Shown in pieces: positions 19,881 through 36,396 of a stretch of 64,000 nt of DNA (within the stretch, counting starts at the first letter, position 1; each line of letters starts with the position of its first letter). Source of the stretch: Vitrella brassicaformis CCMP3155 (lineage: Eukaryota; Protista; Chromerida); contig CDMY01000325.1 in the NCBI GenBank assembly GCA_001179505.1, positions 1 to 64,000 of the forward strand, given 5' to 3'. Below the pieces are notes generated by a model, which saw only the letters and a program-made list of their open reading frames with translations, ran no database searches and was not told where the DNA came from. The translations under genes and the position numbers were made by a program.

Positions 19881-20180
19881 NNNNNNNNNNNNNNNNNNNN
19901 NNNNNNNNNNNNNNNNNNNNNNNNNNNNNNNNNNNNNNNNNNNNNNNNNNNNNNNNNNNNNNNNNNNNNNNNNNNNNNNNNNNNNNNNNNNNNNNNNNNN
20001 NNNNNNNNNNNNNNNNNNNNNNNNNNNNNNNNNNNNNNNNNNNNNNNNNNNNNNNNNNNNNNNNNNNNNNNNNNNNNNNNNNNNNNNNNNNNNNNNNNNN
20101 NNNNNNNNNNNNNNNNNNNNNNNNNNNNNNNNNNNNNNNNNNNNNNNNNNNNNNNNNNNNNNNNNNNNNNNNNNNNNNNN
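19881..20180. other. Assembly gap (300 N)
   Basis: Run of exactly 300 N. Confidence 1.
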
Positions 20181-27399: not shown

Positions 27400-29100
27400 G
27401 CTTGCCTGCCTGCCTGCCTGCCTGGTTGGTTGGTCGTGTGTGTGTGTATGTGTATGTGTGTGTGTGTGTGTGATTTCGGAACGGCCTGTAAGGACCTGTT
27501 GTGGCGTGTGGCGTGTGTGTTTCCTTCCGCTAGCTAATCATCTGTATTATCTATGGTCGGTCTCCTCCTCTCTCTCCATTTGTGCCTGCCCATCTAGGCG
27601 GACAGACAGACAGACAGACAGACGGATGTAACCTAACCTAACCTGATGATGTATAGCTAGAGACAAAGGGAGAAGGCAGGCCTGTCTGTCTGTGTGTCTG
27701 TCTGTCTGTCTGTGTCTGTCTGTGGTTGCACTCTACCTGGGACGGCCGACCTGAAGACCTGAAGCTACTAACTAACTAGTGCCTTGCCATCTCTGTCCAC
27801 ATCCTGGCTAAGCTGACCGGCAGGCAGGGAGGGAGCTGCCTAGGTTGCCTTGCCTTTTCACTACAGCTACTACTGCTGCTGCTGCTGCTGCTGCTGGTGC
27901 CGTTGGCGTTGCTGCTGCGGTGTTGCTGCCTGCTGTTGTGCAGAAATTAAGACAGTGGGTTGGGGGGGGCGGTTGGGTGGGCAGACAGACAGACAGACGG
28001 GCGGACGGGCGGCGATAAAGGATGCATTGCCTGCCTGCCTGCCTGTACGTGTGGGTGCATTGCATTGCCTGCGTGGATTGTATATAGTCAGTGAGTGACC
28101 ATGACAACCACATACATAGGGACATCTGTCTGTACATACATGCATACGCAACCAAGAGAGTAACAGAGAGAGAAAGGGAGACCGAATCGGTGTGTACCAG
28201 TGAGCGAGCGGATGGGCGGGATGGCCACCGCACCGCACCGCACCGCATCATTGATTGCACTGGATTGGATAGCACGAGTGGAAAGGGGTTTTGTGCTGTA
28301 TACCCGAATCTACCGACCTGCCTGCCTGCCTGCCTGCCTCCGAAAGTGTTTCGCCTAGGTGCCTCCACGTTGGCTGCACACACTGCACTGCACTGCACGG
28401 GCGTACGTGCCACTCACTCACTACTCACTGTACAGCTTCCTACCTATCTCTGTCTTCCTGCCTGCCTGGGTGCAGTTGGGTCGGTGGCGACTGGCGACTG
28501 TGTCGGCTTTTTGACATGCCTGCCTGTCTGAAGGGTGGACGACATAGATAGCGTCATAGCATGATAGCAAGATCGCACTGTACATATATCTGAGACGAAG
28601 CCCCTCGCCCCCCTCCCTCCCTCCCTCCCTCACTACTGGCTCGGGTGGTCTTGTCTCTCTGTAAGTAGGTACTAGGCAGGGGCAGGTGGTACGTGTGTGT
28701 GTGCGTGTGTGTGTGTGTGTGTGGCTCTATATGGATGGATGGATGTGTGTGCATGGTCGGTGGCTGGCTGGTGGGGTGGTCCACGGCACCCGTGGGTATG
28801 TGAGCACACAATTTGAGACACACGGTGTTTGTGATGCTGCTGCCCACCCACCGCGGGACGGACGGACACAGAGAGAGAGAGAGAGAGAGAGGAGTGGAAG
28901 GACACACACTCTTCAGTCAATCATTCAATGAATGGATAGATACACCGATGGACGATGGATGGATCAAGGTGTCTTCGCACGCACAGCAGGAGGTCTAGAC
29001 ACACACACACACATGAGCTAATCACTAACCACAGCCGGCAGGCAGGCCGGCAGGGAGGGAGGCCAGAGAAAGCAATCCGATCCGCCAACTACACAACCTG
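27400..29100. repeat. Microsatellite-dense intergenic region between convergent genes
   Basis: Mixed (GCCT)n, (GT)n, (GACA)n, (CTG)n, (GCACT)n, (GGAT)n, (GA)n and (GAGG)n runs. No protein-like ORF. Confidence 0.85.
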
Positions 29101-29228
29101 AAAATCTCTCTCTCGTGTTGACGTGAGTATGCACAACGGCATGGCTCGTGCGTGCCGCAAGATAGATAAGCTAGTCATCACAAGATCCAACCACCCACCC
29201 AGCGCCCCGCCAGTCAACCAACACTCAC

Positions 29229-32200
29229 TCAGTTCTTCTGCTCTGCAGCTGCCCCCTGAACACCTTCCGCCCCCTCCCCGTCAGCCCCTCGTTTCTCGCT
29301 GTCAACGCTCTTGGCGCGCCACTCACGGCGCACTGTGCCGCTACCACTACTGCTGGGCCCATCACCCGCCGCGGCCCCTGCTGCTGGAGGTGCTGCTGCT
29401 GGTGTCGCCTGCCCGTCCCCCTTCTTGACGTCCCCTCGAGTCGGGCTTGCTGGTGGTGGTGTTGGTGTTGGTGCCTTGGCTTTGATGCGCCACTGCTGCT
29501 GCACCTGCTGCACCTGCTGCACCCTCTCTGTGGCGCCTCTCTCGGTGTTGGCCTGCTGCTGCTGCTGTTGCTGATCGCTGTTGGTGTTGTCTGTGTCTTT
29601 GGTGTGGACGGGCCTCCACTTGAGGACGGTCCGTTCTGCTGGGGGAGGGGGGATGACTGTCACAGCTGGCGGCTGTCGCTGTCGCTGCTGGTGCTGCTGC
29701 TGGTGCTGTGGGTGTGGGTGCGATGCTGCGATGTTGAGGGTGGCACGGATGGTCCTCAGCGCGTCGCCCGCAGAGGGGTTGGGGGGTGCCTGTGGATGCT
29801 GATATGGCTGATAATATGGCTGATGCTGTGGCAGCTGCTGGTACATCCCACCACTATGGTGCACCGGATGGTACATGGGTGGCGGCGATGGCATCGCCAT
29901 GTGTGGGGGCCGGTACACAGACGGGGGAATCACATGCGGCACCGACAGCTGGACAGAGGGAGGGGGCGGCATGGGTGGCATCGGTGGCATGGGCGGTGGT
30001 GGACTGGGTCCGGTCAGCACCTGGCTGAGCAGCCTGTCGAAGGCGTTGGCCCCTCCTGGCGGGGGCGGTGGGGGCGGCTGGTATGGGAAAGCGAGGGGGT
30101 CGGTGGAGAGTGGGTGGCCGGCCTGCGATGGGACGTCTGCGGCGGGGGGATGCTTGGTGCGGTTCTTCTTCCGGGCGGTGGACTTCTCCTTCTCCAACTG
30201 AATGAACCAGGCAGGAATCAAGCATGACGCATAACAGACGGCGGGTGTGGTGTGCACACGTGGTTGTGTGAGGGGTAGGGTACCTGTCTGATGTAGTCCC
30301 AGTCTTGCTGTGGGATGGACCCCTCGCGCACCATGTCGCGAATGAGAGTGAAGAACACACCCCCGGGGGTCCGCCGCTTGTTCTGCCCGTCGTTGGTCAG
30401 CTGACCACCTGACATAAGCAAGCACACAACCGATGTCCATGGCGTATTCCCCACCCGGCCGCCCCCAGCCACCCAGCAACCGACTGACCGTTTCTCTCTA
30501 TCTCGAGTGTCTTCTGCAGGATTTCCTCTGTACGCTGGTGCACCAGACAAACAGCAAGGCGGGCGAGAGCAGGGGAGTCGTTCGTTGTGTGGCGGGCGGC
30601 ATGTCTGTCTGTTAGGTGGGTGGTTGGCTTGGGTACCTTCATGCCGAGCCTGACGACCGTCCGCACCACCTGACTGCGCTTAGGCTCCTGCGGATGGATG
30701 GCATGGCGAGGCGAATGGGCGGATGTGTGTGTGTGTAGAGAGAGAGTGAGTGTCCCTACCAACCTACCTTGAGTATGTCGATGACCTTCTCGATGTAGGT
30801 GCGCACCTCATACGACAGGCTGTACATGCCAGCTGCACAGACAGACACAACATACACAACGGGTGTGCACTCTCTTTGGTCCTCACACGGGCGGGCGTAC
30901 CGAAGTGCGCTTCCTCTTGTTGAGCCTGCACCACCCCCACAACGGGAGGAGCGCTCGATGAGCTGGCCTGCTGCTGCTGCTCTTGTGGTGCTTGTGCTGC
31001 GATGGGACTGTTGCTGCTGCTGGGGGCGTCAGGCAAGTCCGTCGCCTGCTCCCCTCCTGCCGCTGCTGACGCTGCTGGTGGGGCGGCTGCCGGTACTTGA
31101 GTAGCTGCTGGTGGGGGTGGGTATACGGGGTTGTTGCCGAGACGAAGCTTCCAGATCAAGGCGTGAAGGTAGGCGCTCTGGACAATATAATCCACAGGCA
31201 AAGGCAAAGGCATTCATTGGTGTGGATGGCACGTTCTTTGGCTGACTGGCCTGGCCCCATAGATACCATGTGTTTCTGCTCTCTGACGGCGGCGAGTCGT
31301 GCGGGCGTGACGTCGAAGCGGTCGGACGCATTCACCTCCGCGCCGTGGGCTATCAAACAGCTCGCATTCGCCACCTATATGCGGGGGATGGATGGATGGA
31401 TGGATGTGCCGATTGATTGTGTGTTGTGTGAGCGCATGGTATGGTACCTCTCCGTACGACGCGGCGGCGTGAAGGGCCGTGCGGCCGTCCTTGGTGCGGG
31501 CATTCGGATCGGCACCTGAGAAAACGAGAAGAGATAGATGGGGCCTCCGGTCTCTGTTTGTTTGTCTGTTCGCCTTTTGTTGTGTGCCTGGAGGGTGTGG
31601 TACGTACCGAGGTGGAGGAGCCACTTGAGGTAGTCAGTGTGGTGTCTGGCCGCCGCGTAGTGCAGGGGCGTGCTGCCGCTCTCGTCAGAGTCATTCACTG
31701 ACACGCACGCACCACGGACACCAAGACGAAGACGCAGGTCAGATGAATGAGAATGTCACGCGCCGTTTGATGTGATGTGGTGGATGTGCTGCGAGTAGGT
31801 ACCTGTGGCCCCGTGGTGCAGCAGCAGTTTTGTGATGTCCGTGTTGCCCTTGCTCGCCGCCAGGTGGATCGGGTAGCTCTGGATGGATGGCAAGAGAGAG
31901 GGAGAGAGAGAGGGAGAGATCTTCCACATGCATCGCATCCTTTTCGCCCGTGTGTGTGCGTTGTGTGTGGCACATACGAAGTTGACTCCCCGCCGCGACG
32001 GCATGAGAGTGTGAGAGAACCGCAAACCGGTCTCGGCACCGTGGTCCAACAACGCCTGGTATGGTGCAAACACCATGGCCAATCAATCAGTAGAGTGATG
32101 ATGGCGTGGTGTGGGTGCAGCGCGTTCCCGACCCAAGCATCTATCTCGCGTACCTTGGCGTATGCGGGTTCGTTGGTGATGATGGTGATGTTGAGGGGCG

Positions 32201-33475
32201 TCCACAACTTATCGTCTGGCACATTCACCTGGTCGGTCAACCACCATAACACAACACAACACAACACAACACAACACAACAAAGCGGACGACCGACTGGT
32301 ATTGGCGATTCTGTGTGCGGTGCGCATCCGCGTGGCGTGTGGGGTGGAGGGTGGATGATGGGTGTGGGTGTGGGTGTGGGTGTGCAAACGTACGTACCGA
32401 TGTGAGTGCGCCGTGTTTGAGGAGCCAGACGACCACCCGCAGCCGCCTGGGCTGCCCACACGCATGGTGAAGCGCCGTACGCCCATCCATGTCCCTATAA
32501 GGAACAATCACACACATATATACACACATGCATCACACGGGGTGGATGGAGATGGGTATTCAATTCCCTGGCTGGCTGCTTCTCCTCTCCATCTCTCTCT
32601 GTGTCTGTCTGGTCCAGACATGCCGAGCCGACCTGCTATTGACGTCATGTCCTTCGTCCATGAGGCGCTTCATCTCAGATATGCGACCACGACACACAGC
32701 TGCATTGATTGCAACCCGCACATCACATCACATGCAATGCATCCACTCACACACACGAACCGACCGATGCACCAACCAACCAACCAACCACCCCACATCA
32801 CACCGCATCTACCTTTGTTGAAGGCCTTCTGCGTGGGGTCGTCCGAGTTGATGGTCAGCTCCAGCCGCTCGTTCTCGCCCTCGTCACCATCACTGCTCCC
32901 AACCGCACCAATGTCATAGTCCACACCCAACGCCTCATCGGGCAGCTCCATCACGCCCTCGTACTCCACCAGGAAGCTGCTGCTGTTGCTGTTGCTGCTA
33001 GAGCTGGTGCCGGTGGCTGCAGCTGGGTTGGCAGAGAGGGAGGGGTGGCGAGGGGTGTGGGGTGGGAGCGGTGCTCTGCTTCTGCTACGGCTGGTGATGC
33101 TGCCCGGCGCGACTGCTACTCTGGTGCCTGAGCTGTTGCTGCCTGTGAACACACAAGGGAAAGTCGTGCACTCATTCTGGTGTGCCCATCTCTGTGTGTG
33201 TGCGTATCTCCCTTGCCTGTTCTGGTGAGGTGCGATGATCTCTTCTGCGCGCCGGCCACCCTGGCGCCGCGGACGACGCCCTCCCCTCTTCGCCTGCTGC
33301 TGGGAGGCCTCTCTCTCTTCTGTGTCTGTGGCGGAGGGGCAGGGCGAACGTCTGTGTGAATGAACTCGTCGAGGAGGCCATACAGCTCCTCCTCCATCGC
33401 CGTATCGTCATCCTCACACGCAACACCAGCACCAGCACCACCACCACAACCAGAAGCAGCAACAGACTCCGCCAT
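29229..33475 (-). CDS. Ankyrin-repeat + PHAX RNA-binding domain protein with Pro/Gln-rich C-terminus
   Basis: About 6 ANK repeats (GRTALHHAC, WTPLNIT, YPIHLAASKGNTDITKLLL, GSTPLHYAAA, GRTALHAAASYG, DVTPARLAA) splice in phase to YIEKVIDILK|EPKRSQVVRTVVRLGMK|RTEEILQKTLEIERNG|GQLTNDGQNKRRTPGGVFFTLIR, the PHAX RBD signature. Confidence 0.85.
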
Positions 33476-33597
33476 CTCTTCGGCTCTGTGCGTGTGGCGA
33501 TCGCACCTTATCTGGCCGGCAACAGATCTTGGCTGGCGTATCCTGTCCGGCGAAAGAAGGACACAGAAGGAGATATTAGTGTTATGGGATGTGGCTG

Positions 33598-36396
33598 ATG
33601 AGGATGAAGAGGGAGGTTATGGGTGTTCATCATCATGATCAAGACGGTGGTGGTGGAGATCGCGTGGTGCGGCGACAGATGCCGAGTGATGGCGCCATGG
33701 ATGGCGGAGACGGAAGCGATGAGGCCTCGCCATCCAAGAAGAAGTGGCTGCTGTTCAACAGGTGGACGGACGCAGAATGCACACACACGCACACCACATC
33801 GTCGAAAGAGAGAGAGGGCGAGAGGGAAGGGATTCACCCTTTCTGTGTGATGTGTGTGCTGTTCATCTCATCTTTCAGGCCCCTGCTCAGCTACGTGCCT
33901 ATCCGTCTGTGCCGTCGCTGCGGCCGACTGCCCTTCTGCATCGCCATCCTCCTGCTCATCCTGGTCTCCAGAGCCCTCCTGGAGGAGCTGTGGGACACAT
34001 CACTCAACCCAGCACTCACAGAAATCTACACGCTGCTCGAAGACGACCTCATGGGATCTGACGTCAAGTGCACCGACACTGACACCCTGTCGGTCAAGAG
34101 CATCGTGGAAAAGCGGCGAAATGGCCTGCAGACGGTGGATGAGAGTGGTACGGTGCAGGCGGCTCGTCAGGTGTGCGAGTGTCTGTTGCGGCCTCTGGTC
34201 AAGGAGGGCGGGGTTGAGGACTTCCAGGGAACGACGAGGCGGTATGGGGCGAGGGATTGGTCGGATGATGGGCAGTCTGCCAAGGTCAAGGTGTCCTCCA
34301 TAGCTGAGAGGCGACAGCTGCTGACGGGGCTGCTCGACAGCATGCACTGCGAACTCCATGTGTACCAGTACCCCATCCCACCTGGTGAGCGACGGACGAG
34401 AGAAAAAAGCTGAAATGCCCTCATTTTGTATCCGTTCGTTCTGTGCTCTCTCTCTCCTCTCTCTCTCAGTGAGTGCTGCCCACCAGCCCGAGCCGCTGTC
34501 GTTGCGCAAGGTGTTGCGTGCCAAGGGCAACTCGGCATACCTCCTGGAGAGCGTCTTCTGGTCCCACACACAGCAGCTGCCCAACTTCCACACCATTTCT
34601 TACCACGGAGGCGATCCCTCTGTTGCATCGGCCATTGCATCCCTCACCGCCGCCTTTGCCGTTCCTACTTTTCCCACCACAGCAGTGTTTGGCCACCGGT
34701 CGGACTTGGCCGTCATGTGGAAGTCGACGCTCAAGAAATGGAACCTCGGTATGGTATGCCTGTGGAGGAGTGAAGGCGTCCGATTGATGGCCCCCTCTCT
34801 ACCTCTGTGCTTTTGTGTTGCGCAGGCGGGATGGACAATTTGGACCGGTGGCGGACGGCCGAGGACGTCCGTGGGGCTGTGGAGAGCATCCGGCACGAGT
34901 ACCCCTACTTCAACGAGACTGAGGGGCGGTTCCACTTCTGGGTGGTGTCGCAGGACGGCGGCAAGCCCGAGTACTCGGCATTCGCTGACCGCACGTTCAA
35001 CGCCAATGCGTCGGCACTCACCTGCACCAGCGACGTCGTCGACTATCACAAGGTGGGGNNNNNNNNNNNNNNNNNNNNNNNNNNNNNNNNNNNNNNNNNN
35101 NNNNNNNNNNNNNNNNNNNNNNNNNNNNNNNNNNNNNNNNNNNNNNNNNNNNNNNNNNNNNNNNNNNNNNNNNNNNNNNNNNNNNNNNNNNNNNNNNNNN
35201 NNNNNNNNNNNNNNNNNNNNNNNNNNNNNNNNNNNNNNNNNNNNNNNNNNNNNNNNNNNNNNNNNNNNNNNNNNNNNNNNNNNNNNNNNNNNNNNNNNNN
35301 NNNNNNNNNNNNNNNNNNNNNNNNNNNNNNNNNNNNNNNNNNNNNNNNNNNNNNNNNNGGGATGGAGGGAGGGAGGGAGGGAGGGATGGATCTGATGGAC
35401 AGAAATGGGGATGGCATGGCTCTGTGTGCTCACTCAAACAGATGTTCAACATGCGGAGGTATCACCATTGGGACTCGAATGAGCCACTGACTGTGCCATT
35501 CGAGCCTCCATACAGGTCGGTAAGGAGAGCGTCAGCCAGCCTATGTATGTTGAATCCACCCTGCAAAACATCCACCCGTCAGCTTCAACCCTCGCCGCGA
35601 CGTGGCCATATCCCTGTCGGGCAACATCATCCGGGCAGCAAGGGCGAGAAGGGACGTTCCACAGCCGCCACCAACCACACCCAGCACCAGCAGCACCACG
35701 GACGACACACCGCCCCTTCCCTCTGGCCCTTCGCGCATCCCCGCCCTGCTGCAAGCACTCAACAGAGGGCATCTCGTTTTTTTCGCCGGCAAGATCGGCC
35801 AGGGCTCGCCCTTCCGCGGGGGCAAGCTGCGGGTGGCCTTGCGCGACAGCCTTCAGGACACCCCAGAGGCGCTCATAGTGGAGGGCAGGATGAGCAGAGG
35901 CGACTACGAGAGGGCCCTGCGTGAGTCGGTGTTCTGTCTGTGTCCGCGGGGGTCTCGCGGGTGGAGTCCGCGGCTGATGGAGGCGGTGTGGTACGGGTGC
36001 ATCCCTGTGGTGCTGGCGGATGACTACTGGATGCCGCAGGGGTGCTTCTGGGACTGGACGGCACTCGCTGTCCTCATACCTGAGAGCGACGCGCTCAAGA
36101 CCAAGGAGCGGCTGATGGAGCTGTCACTTGCTGATGTCAGGGCTAGACAGAGGGGCCTGCTGCAGGTACCTCATGCACACAGGCACAGACACAGCACCCA
36201 ACACACCACACCACACCACACAAACAGACGGCATGTCATGTAGCTGCGTGTCTTTGTTTGTCTCGGTTTCCTGCAGGTGCGTCACCACTTCATGTACCAC
36301 GTGAATCTGCAGCGAGGCGACGCAACGGACATGGCCTTTCTGGAGCTCTGGCTCAAACAGAATGTCTGCCCCGTCCTGGCGGGCATCACACAATGA
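33598..36396 (+). CDS. Exostosin-family (GT47) glycosyltransferase, type II membrane; interrupted by N gap
   Basis: N-terminal TM FCIAILLLILVS; LHVYQY; YPYFNETEGRFHFWVVSQDGG; LVFFAG; YERALRESVFCLCPRGSRGWSPRLMEAVWYGCIPVVLADDYWMP; VRHHFMY. Start could be 33619. Confidence 0.92.
35059..35358. other. Assembly gap (300 N)
   Basis: Run of exactly 300 N. Confidence 1.

Follow-up and report, generated by a model that had tools for sequence, protein, structure and literature searches.

The small nuclear RNA (snRNA) export adaptor PHAX is, in human, a protein of 394 amino acids (aa) that comprises an N-terminal ARS2-recognition motif (ARM), a CK2-phosphorylated cluster (ST2), a W118 helix that binds CBP80 and runs on into a CRM1-binding nuclear export signal (NES; residues 116-139), an RNA-binding domain with little sequence specificity for RNA, and a C-terminal peptide that binds the groove of the cap-binding complex (CBC), and it has no ankyrin repeats (bioRxiv 10.1101/2024.11.28.625805). 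A different arrangement, with an ankyrin region and a PHAX RNA-binding domain, has been described for Plasmodium falciparum PF3D7_1021900 (PMC3640944). The present study concerns a gene of this second kind in the free-living alga Vitrella brassicaformis CCMP3155, located in a stretch of 64,000 nucleotides (nt) that is here called the window (record CDMY01000325.1 of assembly GCA_001179505.1). The original prediction, made from the letters of the sequence alone, read the gene as a lineage-specific fusion of ankyrin repeats to a PHAX RNA-binding domain and proposed a role as an RNA export or ribonucleoprotein (RNP) adaptor; its statement that canonical PHAX lacks ankyrin repeats agrees with the human domain scheme just given.

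The gene is real, transcribed and correctly annotated in the public Vitrella assembly, and it is close to certain that it represents an orthologue in the 'ankyrin repeat / PHAX domain-containing protein' family (ANK-PHAX) of apicomplexans and chrompodellids. The architecture was already known from databases, from PF3D7_1021900 (PMC3640944) and from the Cryptosporidium crystal structure 2W4S, and examples have been recorded from Plasmodium, Cryptosporidium, Babesia, Theileria and coccidia. For the Vitrella window the finding adds little, the domain pair being precomputed in databases, and the residual interest of the family lies in its function: the Plasmodium orthologue recurs in RNA-protein proteomics, and in Vitrella, as a free-living relative, it could be possible to resolve the RNA targets and ankyrin partners. 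The best explanation of the whole, to which a probability of roughly 0.6 is given, is that the Vitrella protein would serve as an RNA-to-protein adaptor on messenger RNPs (mRNPs) or nuclear RNPs.

Gene, domains and family

The coding sequence (CDS) is divided among 16 exons on the minus strand, from an ATG at 33475 to a TGA ending at 29229, and its 2781 nt specify a protein of 926 aa, with all junctions in phase and zero internal stops. This exon model confirmed the fusion as it had been traced from the ankyrin exons into the PHAX domain, and all the peptides quoted at that time (EPKRSQVVRTVVRLG, TLEIERNGG, TNDG and RRTPGGVFF) are present in the translation. The latter was identical (100%, full length) to the annotated V. 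brassicaformis CCMP3155 protein P0001; UniRef names the identical Vitrella protein after PHAX, and its precomputed Pfam list has both domain types. The 15 introns measure 68-169 nt, and 14 are of the GT-AG type, while intron 1 (33216-33143, minus strand) has a GC donor (GCAAGG...CAG) that is supported by an RNA-derived contig as well as by the public annotation.

That contig, L002, is a sequence of 9,039 nt from the Logan assembly of run ERR558152, and it contains the ANK-PHAX open reading frame (ORF) as an uninterrupted 2781 nt. When aligned to the window with blastn, its block ends coincided with the exon borders (within the few-base overlaps of adjacent blocks); 14 of the 16 blocks were 100% identical and two short ones 98.3-98.7%. 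Since the blocks end at exon borders and the introns are removed, the contig derives from spliced RNA. All introns were spliced out, including intron 10 (31266..31178) and intron 11 (30900..30833), and RNA is thereby provided across both of the junctions, at 31260-31190 and 30900-30830, where the original prediction had looked for it. It had also raised the prospect of polyadenylation within 31200-30850, for which there was no evidence; the contig aligned without a break from 30200 to 28866, so that the RNA extends at least 363 nt beyond the stop codon.

Both domain types were readily recognized. The Pfam models Ank, Ank_2, Ank_4 and Ank_5, along with related ones, matched the Vitrella protein with E values of 1e-22 to 1e-34 (Ank 108.6 bits, Ank_2 117.8 bits), and the ankyrin domain amounts to about 6-7 repeats. 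The profile search proposed for the other half was equally clear, as PHAX_RNA-bd (PF10258) matched aa 523-608 (window 30791..30186) at 68.5 bits against a cut-off of 25 (E 5e-19), and the excised domain scored 73.9 bits, covering profile positions 3-84 of 84. The Vitrella protein is, then, a member of the PHAX_RNA-bd domain family. Among Protein Data Bank (PDB) sequences, the best phmmer match of the domain was 2w4s_A (E 1.2e-16), and human PHAX was matched at E 6e-12 (8pnt_C/2xc7_A). The domain includes the sequences ERNGGQL and RRTPGGVFF, and in alignments A1 and A2 neither the NGG nor the PGG glycine pair varies.

The remaining parts of the protein are of biased composition or without recognizable relatives. 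No Pfam or PDB similarity was found for the N-terminal region (aa 1-196), the linker between the two domains is composed of 24% Ala, 18% Pro and 14% Gln, and the tail (aa 621-926, about 300 aa) of 20% Pro, 12% Gln and 11% Ala. The tail had been described beforehand as rich in Pro, Gln and His, of which Pro and Gln were borne out, whereas His falls outside the six commonest residues and Ala takes its place. Searches of the tail against PDB sequences gave chance-level matches alone (E above 1), and the same was true of the N-terminal 196 aa. Three Trp-Arg motifs were seen in the tail, at aa 798, 840 and 897 (LKWRPVHTK, QQWRIKAKA and REWRAKSVD), and orthologues from coccidians and from EukProt likewise have, in their tails, a Trp followed by basic residues (VWAPKKRGG, AWKTKGGR and QWPAAKKPQGK).

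An AlphaFold2 (AF2) model of the core, comprising ankyrin domain, linker and PHAX domain and built with an 18-sequence family alignment, had a mean predicted local distance difference test score (pLDDT) of 84.8 and a predicted template modelling (TM) score (pTM) of 0.78. Both domains were modelled confidently, most 10-residue block means being above 90 and those over the ankyrin repeats 88-98, while aa 439-500 fell below 50, which indicates that this part of the linker is probably a disordered tether. The ankyrin part of the model superposes on 7-repeat ankyrin structures (Foldseek E 1e-13, with TM reaching 0.89 across some 230 residues). A Foldseek search with the whole core was swamped by ankyrin and designed-repeat structures and was uninformative on the PHAX part, so it was rerun with that domain alone (AF2 pLDDT 92.2). 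The significant PDB matches were then of just two kinds: 2W4S (TMt 0.91, root mean square deviation 1.4 A), which was deposited as 'Ankyrin-repeat protein' under the title 'novel RNA-binding domain in Cryptosporidium parvum', and 2XC7 (TMt 0.63), the human PHAX domain bound to single-stranded RNA (ssRNA).

The distribution of the architecture was followed by an exhaustive HMMER search of 1.84 billion cluster representatives with the 112-aa PHAX domain, which returned 777 proteins at E<=1e-3. A word-indexed protein search with the PHAX region had found the self-match only and missed Babesia and Theileria orthologues within the same length range, and was thus insensitive. Of the 20 longest close matches, 17 had, by Pfam, a lone PHAX_RNA-bd domain with Ank on its N-terminal side, and by phmmer, ankyrin repeats preceded the PHAX domain in 20 of the best 150 of the 777 cluster representatives. 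Within these best 150, every named ANK-bearing protein was from an apicomplexan or a chrompodellid, the named carriers being Colpodella angusta, Babesia gibsoni, B. ovata, B. microti, Theileria orientalis, Cystoisospora suis, Besnoitia besnoiti, Cyclospora cayetanensis, Cryptosporidium ryanae and Cardiosporidium cionae; the fusion is in this sense clade-specific, as the original prediction of a lineage-specific protein had it. The closest match overall was a fragment from Piridium sociabile, and the named matches without ankyrin repeats were the ordinary PHAX proteins of animals (Holothuria, Haliotis) and of the green alga Picocystis. In the family alignment, colinearity extends from the final ankyrin repeats through the linker into the PHAX domain.

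In a tree of 83 PHAX domains (109 columns, quick search), all 20 ANK rows lay on one side of a branch with 97% support by the Shimodaira-Hasegawa-like approximate likelihood ratio test (SH-aLRT), so that the Vitrella domain groups with those of other ANK-bearing proteins and separately from ANK-less ones, such as those of animals and green algae. That side held 24 rows in all, the other four being short and probably truncated ORFs, and the clustering of the ANK labels was matched by none of 500 shuffles. A fusion that arose once would agree with this tree, though the tree does not prove it.

A further feature of the family lies upstream of the ankyrin repeats, where the motif LN..IY.F(V/I)..C was noticed in 12 of 19 members (P0004, P0007, P0009, P0011, P0012, P0015, P0016, P0017, P0024, P0028, P0037 and P0112). 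It may serve these proteins as a peptide for binding partners. A profile made from the 12 instances found no counterpart in the Vitrella protein; the stretch EEELYGLLDEFIHTDV (aa 28-43) resembles the motif by eye, was not detected by the profile, and is not claimed as an instance.

Proposed function and rival explanations

Published work on the function of the ANK-PHAX family consists of proteomic co-purification, and a literature search on 2W4S, on PF10258/IPR019385 and on PHAX in Cryptosporidium turned up nothing useful. PF3D7_1021900 was strongly enriched in a poly(A)-mRNA interactome capture from P. falciparum (PMC4933991), and its P. berghei counterpart, PBANKA_0506100, co-purifies with GBP2 alongside ALBA2, PABP1, DDX6/DOZI and CITH (PMC8479154). 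The P. falciparum protein is also among those recovered with the non-coding RNA RUF6 (PMC9670795). An adaptor on mRNPs or nuclear RNPs is favoured because the Plasmodium orthologue has been found on RNPs in these published proteomic studies. The protein is modular, a folded ankyrin platform being tethered through the predicted disordered linker to the helical PHAX-type domain, with low-complexity regions flanking both. Under this explanation the PHAX-type domain would bind ssRNA with little sequence specificity, as the human domain does, a property suggested for the Vitrella domain by 2XC7 and by the mRNA capture of the Plasmodium orthologue; the ankyrin groove may recruit one or more protein partners, the Pro/Gln-rich tail may aid association with RNPs, and the whole would connect RNA to protein on these particles. 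This mechanism, taken by itself, is given about even odds.

The predicted role had two halves, and they fared differently. A part as RNP adaptor fits the Plasmodium data (PMC4933991, PMC8479154), whereas RNA export is unsupported here: apart from the RNA-binding domain, nothing resembling human PHAX was detected, neither an ARM nor an ST2 cluster nor a conserved Trp helix or NES. None of the chance matches obtained with the N-terminal 196 aa and the tail against the PDB, which includes full-length human PHAX, was to PHAX. An expression for the ARS2 motif, whose order is acidic-Gly-acidic-hydrophobic ([DE][DE]G[DEQ][ILVM], a rendering of our own), had zero matches in the 926 aa, the nearest sequence being GDEGENE, and a scan for CK2 sites gave eight scattered S/T-x-x-D/E positions and no ST2-like cluster. 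One attractive match to the NES consensus that includes a Trp was present outside the PHAX domain, LHALIWKLRL (aa 420-429); it was rejected as evidence for CRM1 binding, since orthologues do not conserve it and it forms the helix that caps the final ankyrin repeat. Because the canonical ARS2, CBC, CRM1 and CK2 motifs were not found, no conventional CBC-CRM1 snRNA export adaptor is apparent, and on its sequence the Vitrella protein does not appear to be PHAX in the sense of that adaptor.

Several points weigh against the RNP adaptor proposed here. Its function in Vitrella would be transferred wholly from Plasmodium proteomics, which are correlative, and the domain tree was made by a quick search from some 109 columns. 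Short linear motifs of the NES and Trp-helix type evolve fast and can escape sequence searches, so their apparent absence is weak evidence and a CRM1 role remains as a rival; LHALIWKLRL does, on its face, fit the NES consensus and include a Trp. Moreover, the authors of the P. berghei study interpret their own data as favouring a CRM1/exportin route (PMC8479154).

The last point leads to an alternative that is unlikely, if of some substance, namely that the protein is the functional PHAX of its lineage: a phosphorylation-regulated bridge that would link capped small RNAs bound by CBC, and perhaps certain mRNAs, with CRM1-RanGTP for nuclear export, and in which the ankyrin domain is an extra module and the CBC and CRM1 motifs have diverged past recognition. 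Its RNA-binding domain is indeed a true PHAX homologue in sequence and fold, the N-terminal region is acidic, and to the NES-like match and the CRM1 route proposed for the P. berghei orthologue may be added that orthologues of Mex67/Mtr2 are reported missing from malaria parasite genomes (PMC8479154), which makes alternative export routes plausible. However, resemblance to human PHAX ends at the RNA-binding domain, the ARM motif and an ST2-like CK2 cluster were not found, the NES-like stretch is an unconserved ankyrin helix, Exportin-1 was missing from the GBP2 pull-down in which the P. berghei orthologue was found (PMC8479154), and in Plasmodium the protein has been captured with poly(A) mRNA and purified together with factors of translational repression. 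Rather doubtful, too, is a more sweeping view, in which ANK-PHAX would be the only PHAX-domain protein of the apicomplexan and chrompodellid lineage, an ancestral PHAX rewired for the export or storage of poly(A) mRNPs, its disordered CBC-, CRM1- and ARS2-binding motifs having been replaced by a folded ankyrin platform. If true, this would amount to a clade-specific logic of RNA export, given the reported absence of Mex67/Mtr2 orthologues from malaria parasites, and it could be studied in a free-living alga as a model that is tractable and non-pathogenic.

It is improbable that the protein is instead a nuclear scaffold associated with chromatin or non-coding RNA (ncRNA), whose RNA-binding domain holds regulatory RNAs at loci while the ankyrin repeats recruit chromatin or helicase partners. 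PF3D7_1021900 is present in a chromatin isolation by RNA purification and mass spectrometry (ChIRP-MS) experiment on RUF6 ncRNA and is common to that set, a DDX5 pull-down and var-promoter proteins (PMC9670795), and a basic stretch resembling a nuclear localization signal follows the PHAX domain. Yet this is one proteomic overlap in one species, the ncRNA family is parasite-specific and not necessarily found in Vitrella, abundant RNA-binding proteins are frequent passengers in ChIRP-MS, and the mRNA-capture and GBP2 data favour mRNPs. Least probable by far, and already contradicted, is that separate ankyrin and PHAX-domain genes were joined artificially across 31200-30850. The halves are linked solely by a low-complexity linker exon followed by an intron of 68 nt, and the Logan contig is itself a chimera of the transcripts of four neighbouring genes; against this, introns 10 and 11 are precisely removed within a single uninterrupted 2781-nt ORF of that RNA-derived contig, and the order ANK then PHAX recurs across 20 cluster representatives that are independent of one another, among them complete ORFs from transcriptomes such as that of Colpodella angusta.

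Features of the locus and tandem PHAX-like domains

The features of the gene are collected in Table 1. The window has a eukaryotic gene structure, with about 57% G+C and short GT-AG introns, and contains three scaffold gaps of 300 N (2593-2892, 19881-20180 and 35059-35358). An Rfam scan of the whole window found zero RNA families, so there is no intronic small nucleolar RNA or other RNA gene that would explain the locus.

Table 1. Parts of the Vitrella ANK-PHAX gene, with positions in the window
Feature	Position	Strand	Evidence
Complete CDS, stop codon included	29229..33475	-	Exon model; annotated Vitrella protein P0001; spliced RNA-derived contig L002
N-terminal region, aa 1-196, Ser/Ala/Gly-rich, partly acidic; exons 1-2 (33475..33217, 33142..32813)	32813..33475	-	
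Ankyrin-repeat domain, aa ~197-427; exons 3-10 and start of exon 11 (capping helix)	31145..32699	-	
Pro/Ala/Gln linker, aa ~428-508; remainder of exon 11	30901..31144	-	
PHAX-type RNA-binding domain with N-terminal helix, aa 509-620; exons 12-15 and first codons of exon 16	30186..30832	-	
PHAX-domain exons 12-15	30832..30768, 30687..30637, 30534..30489, 30408..30284	-	
Exon 16: end of RNA-binding domain, basic stretch ARKKNRTKH, low-complexity tail, stop codon	29229..30197	-	
3' untranslated region (UTR), at least 363 nt	28866..29228	-	RNA-derived contig L002

Contig L002 also joins the transcripts of three neighbouring genes and covers window positions 41129-28866, so that four adjacent genes on alternating strands are traversed by a single RNA contig. 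This suggests overlapping UTRs, a bidirectional promoter, or an assembly merged from unstranded reads; the merging probably reflects overlapping transcription and is no fault of the ANK-PHAX ORF. The divergent neighbour, an Exostosin_GT47 gene on the plus strand, has its start codon about 115-145 bp from the ANK-PHAX ATG (window 33475-33619), and the third N gap lies within the region of this gene, where L002 jumps it between 35440 and 35052. Intron 4 of the ANK-PHAX gene holds two microsatellites, given here on the plus strand, (AACAC)x6.8 at 32248-32281 and (GTGGGT)x8.5 at 32332-32384, and a (GT)n run occurs at 28693-28723, downstream of the mapped 3' UTR.

Several of the high-scoring PHAX_RNA-bd proteins lacked ankyrin repeats and had the domain repeated two to four times in tandem. 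Contigs that were compact, intron-less and prokaryote-like encoded ANK-less proteins of one to four copies (L003:8001-9029, plus strand; L004:2390-3418; L005:6001-7101; L007:751-1617). One of them, P0014, had three copies (137.6 bits) and was located on a 49.6-kb contig of compact, intron-less genes, in the neighbourhood of a Prim-Pol/Toprim primase, a ParA-like ATPase, a ParM/ALP actin-like partition protein and a DUF4417 nuclease, a setting that from its gene content looks like that of a plasmid or conjugative element. Another two proteins with the PHAX domain, which is duplicated in one of them and single in the other, were P0013, near ParA, and P0029, near a DDE_3 transposase. A tblastn search with P0014 of the PLSDB plasmids and INPHARED phages gave zero matches. 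A supposedly eukaryotic RNA-binding domain thus seems, from these sequences, to have close relatives on prokaryotic mobile elements.

Comparison with known systems

The Vitrella protein may be set beside three kinds of known protein. Generic ankyrin scaffolds, such as ankyrin-B/R and the designed proteins, consist of about seven stacked helix-turn-helix repeats, as does the corresponding part of the Vitrella protein, but they have no RNA-binding domain, and the ANK-PHAX family differs from them also by a conserved insertion between repeats 3 and 4 (L.H.CAP.R.G...S.AIHFAA).

The apicomplexan members of that family, which include PF3D7_1021900 (formerly the '10b antigen'), P. berghei PBANKA_0506100, the protein of 2W4S, and the orthologues of Babesia, Theileria and the coccidia, share with the Vitrella protein the same order of modules: a variable N-terminus, the ankyrin domain, a linker, PHAX_RNA-bd, a basic stretch and a variable tail. 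Their PHAX domains are 34-46% identical to that of Vitrella and colinear with it together with the last repeats. The differences lie in the linker, which in Vitrella is expanded to about 80 residues of Pro/Ala/Gln compared with a handful to about 30 in other family members, in the tail, where Vitrella has its own Pro/Gln sequence of about 300 aa, and in the way of life of the hosts, the apicomplexan ones being parasites while Vitrella is photosynthetic and free-living.

With canonical PHAX, the Vitrella protein has in common a homologous RNA-binding domain of the same helical fold, in which both glycine pairs, those of NGG and PGG, are retained, and in both proteins the remainder outside the folded parts is largely disordered. 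The Vitrella protein is, however, more than twice as long, and the ARM, the ST2 cluster, the W118 helix with its NES, and the C-terminal peptide for the CBC groove have no detectable counterpart in it. This comparison qualifies an older statement of PHAX as an animal innovation (PMC3032688), in that the RNA-binding domain has a far wider distribution than the export adaptor that contains it.

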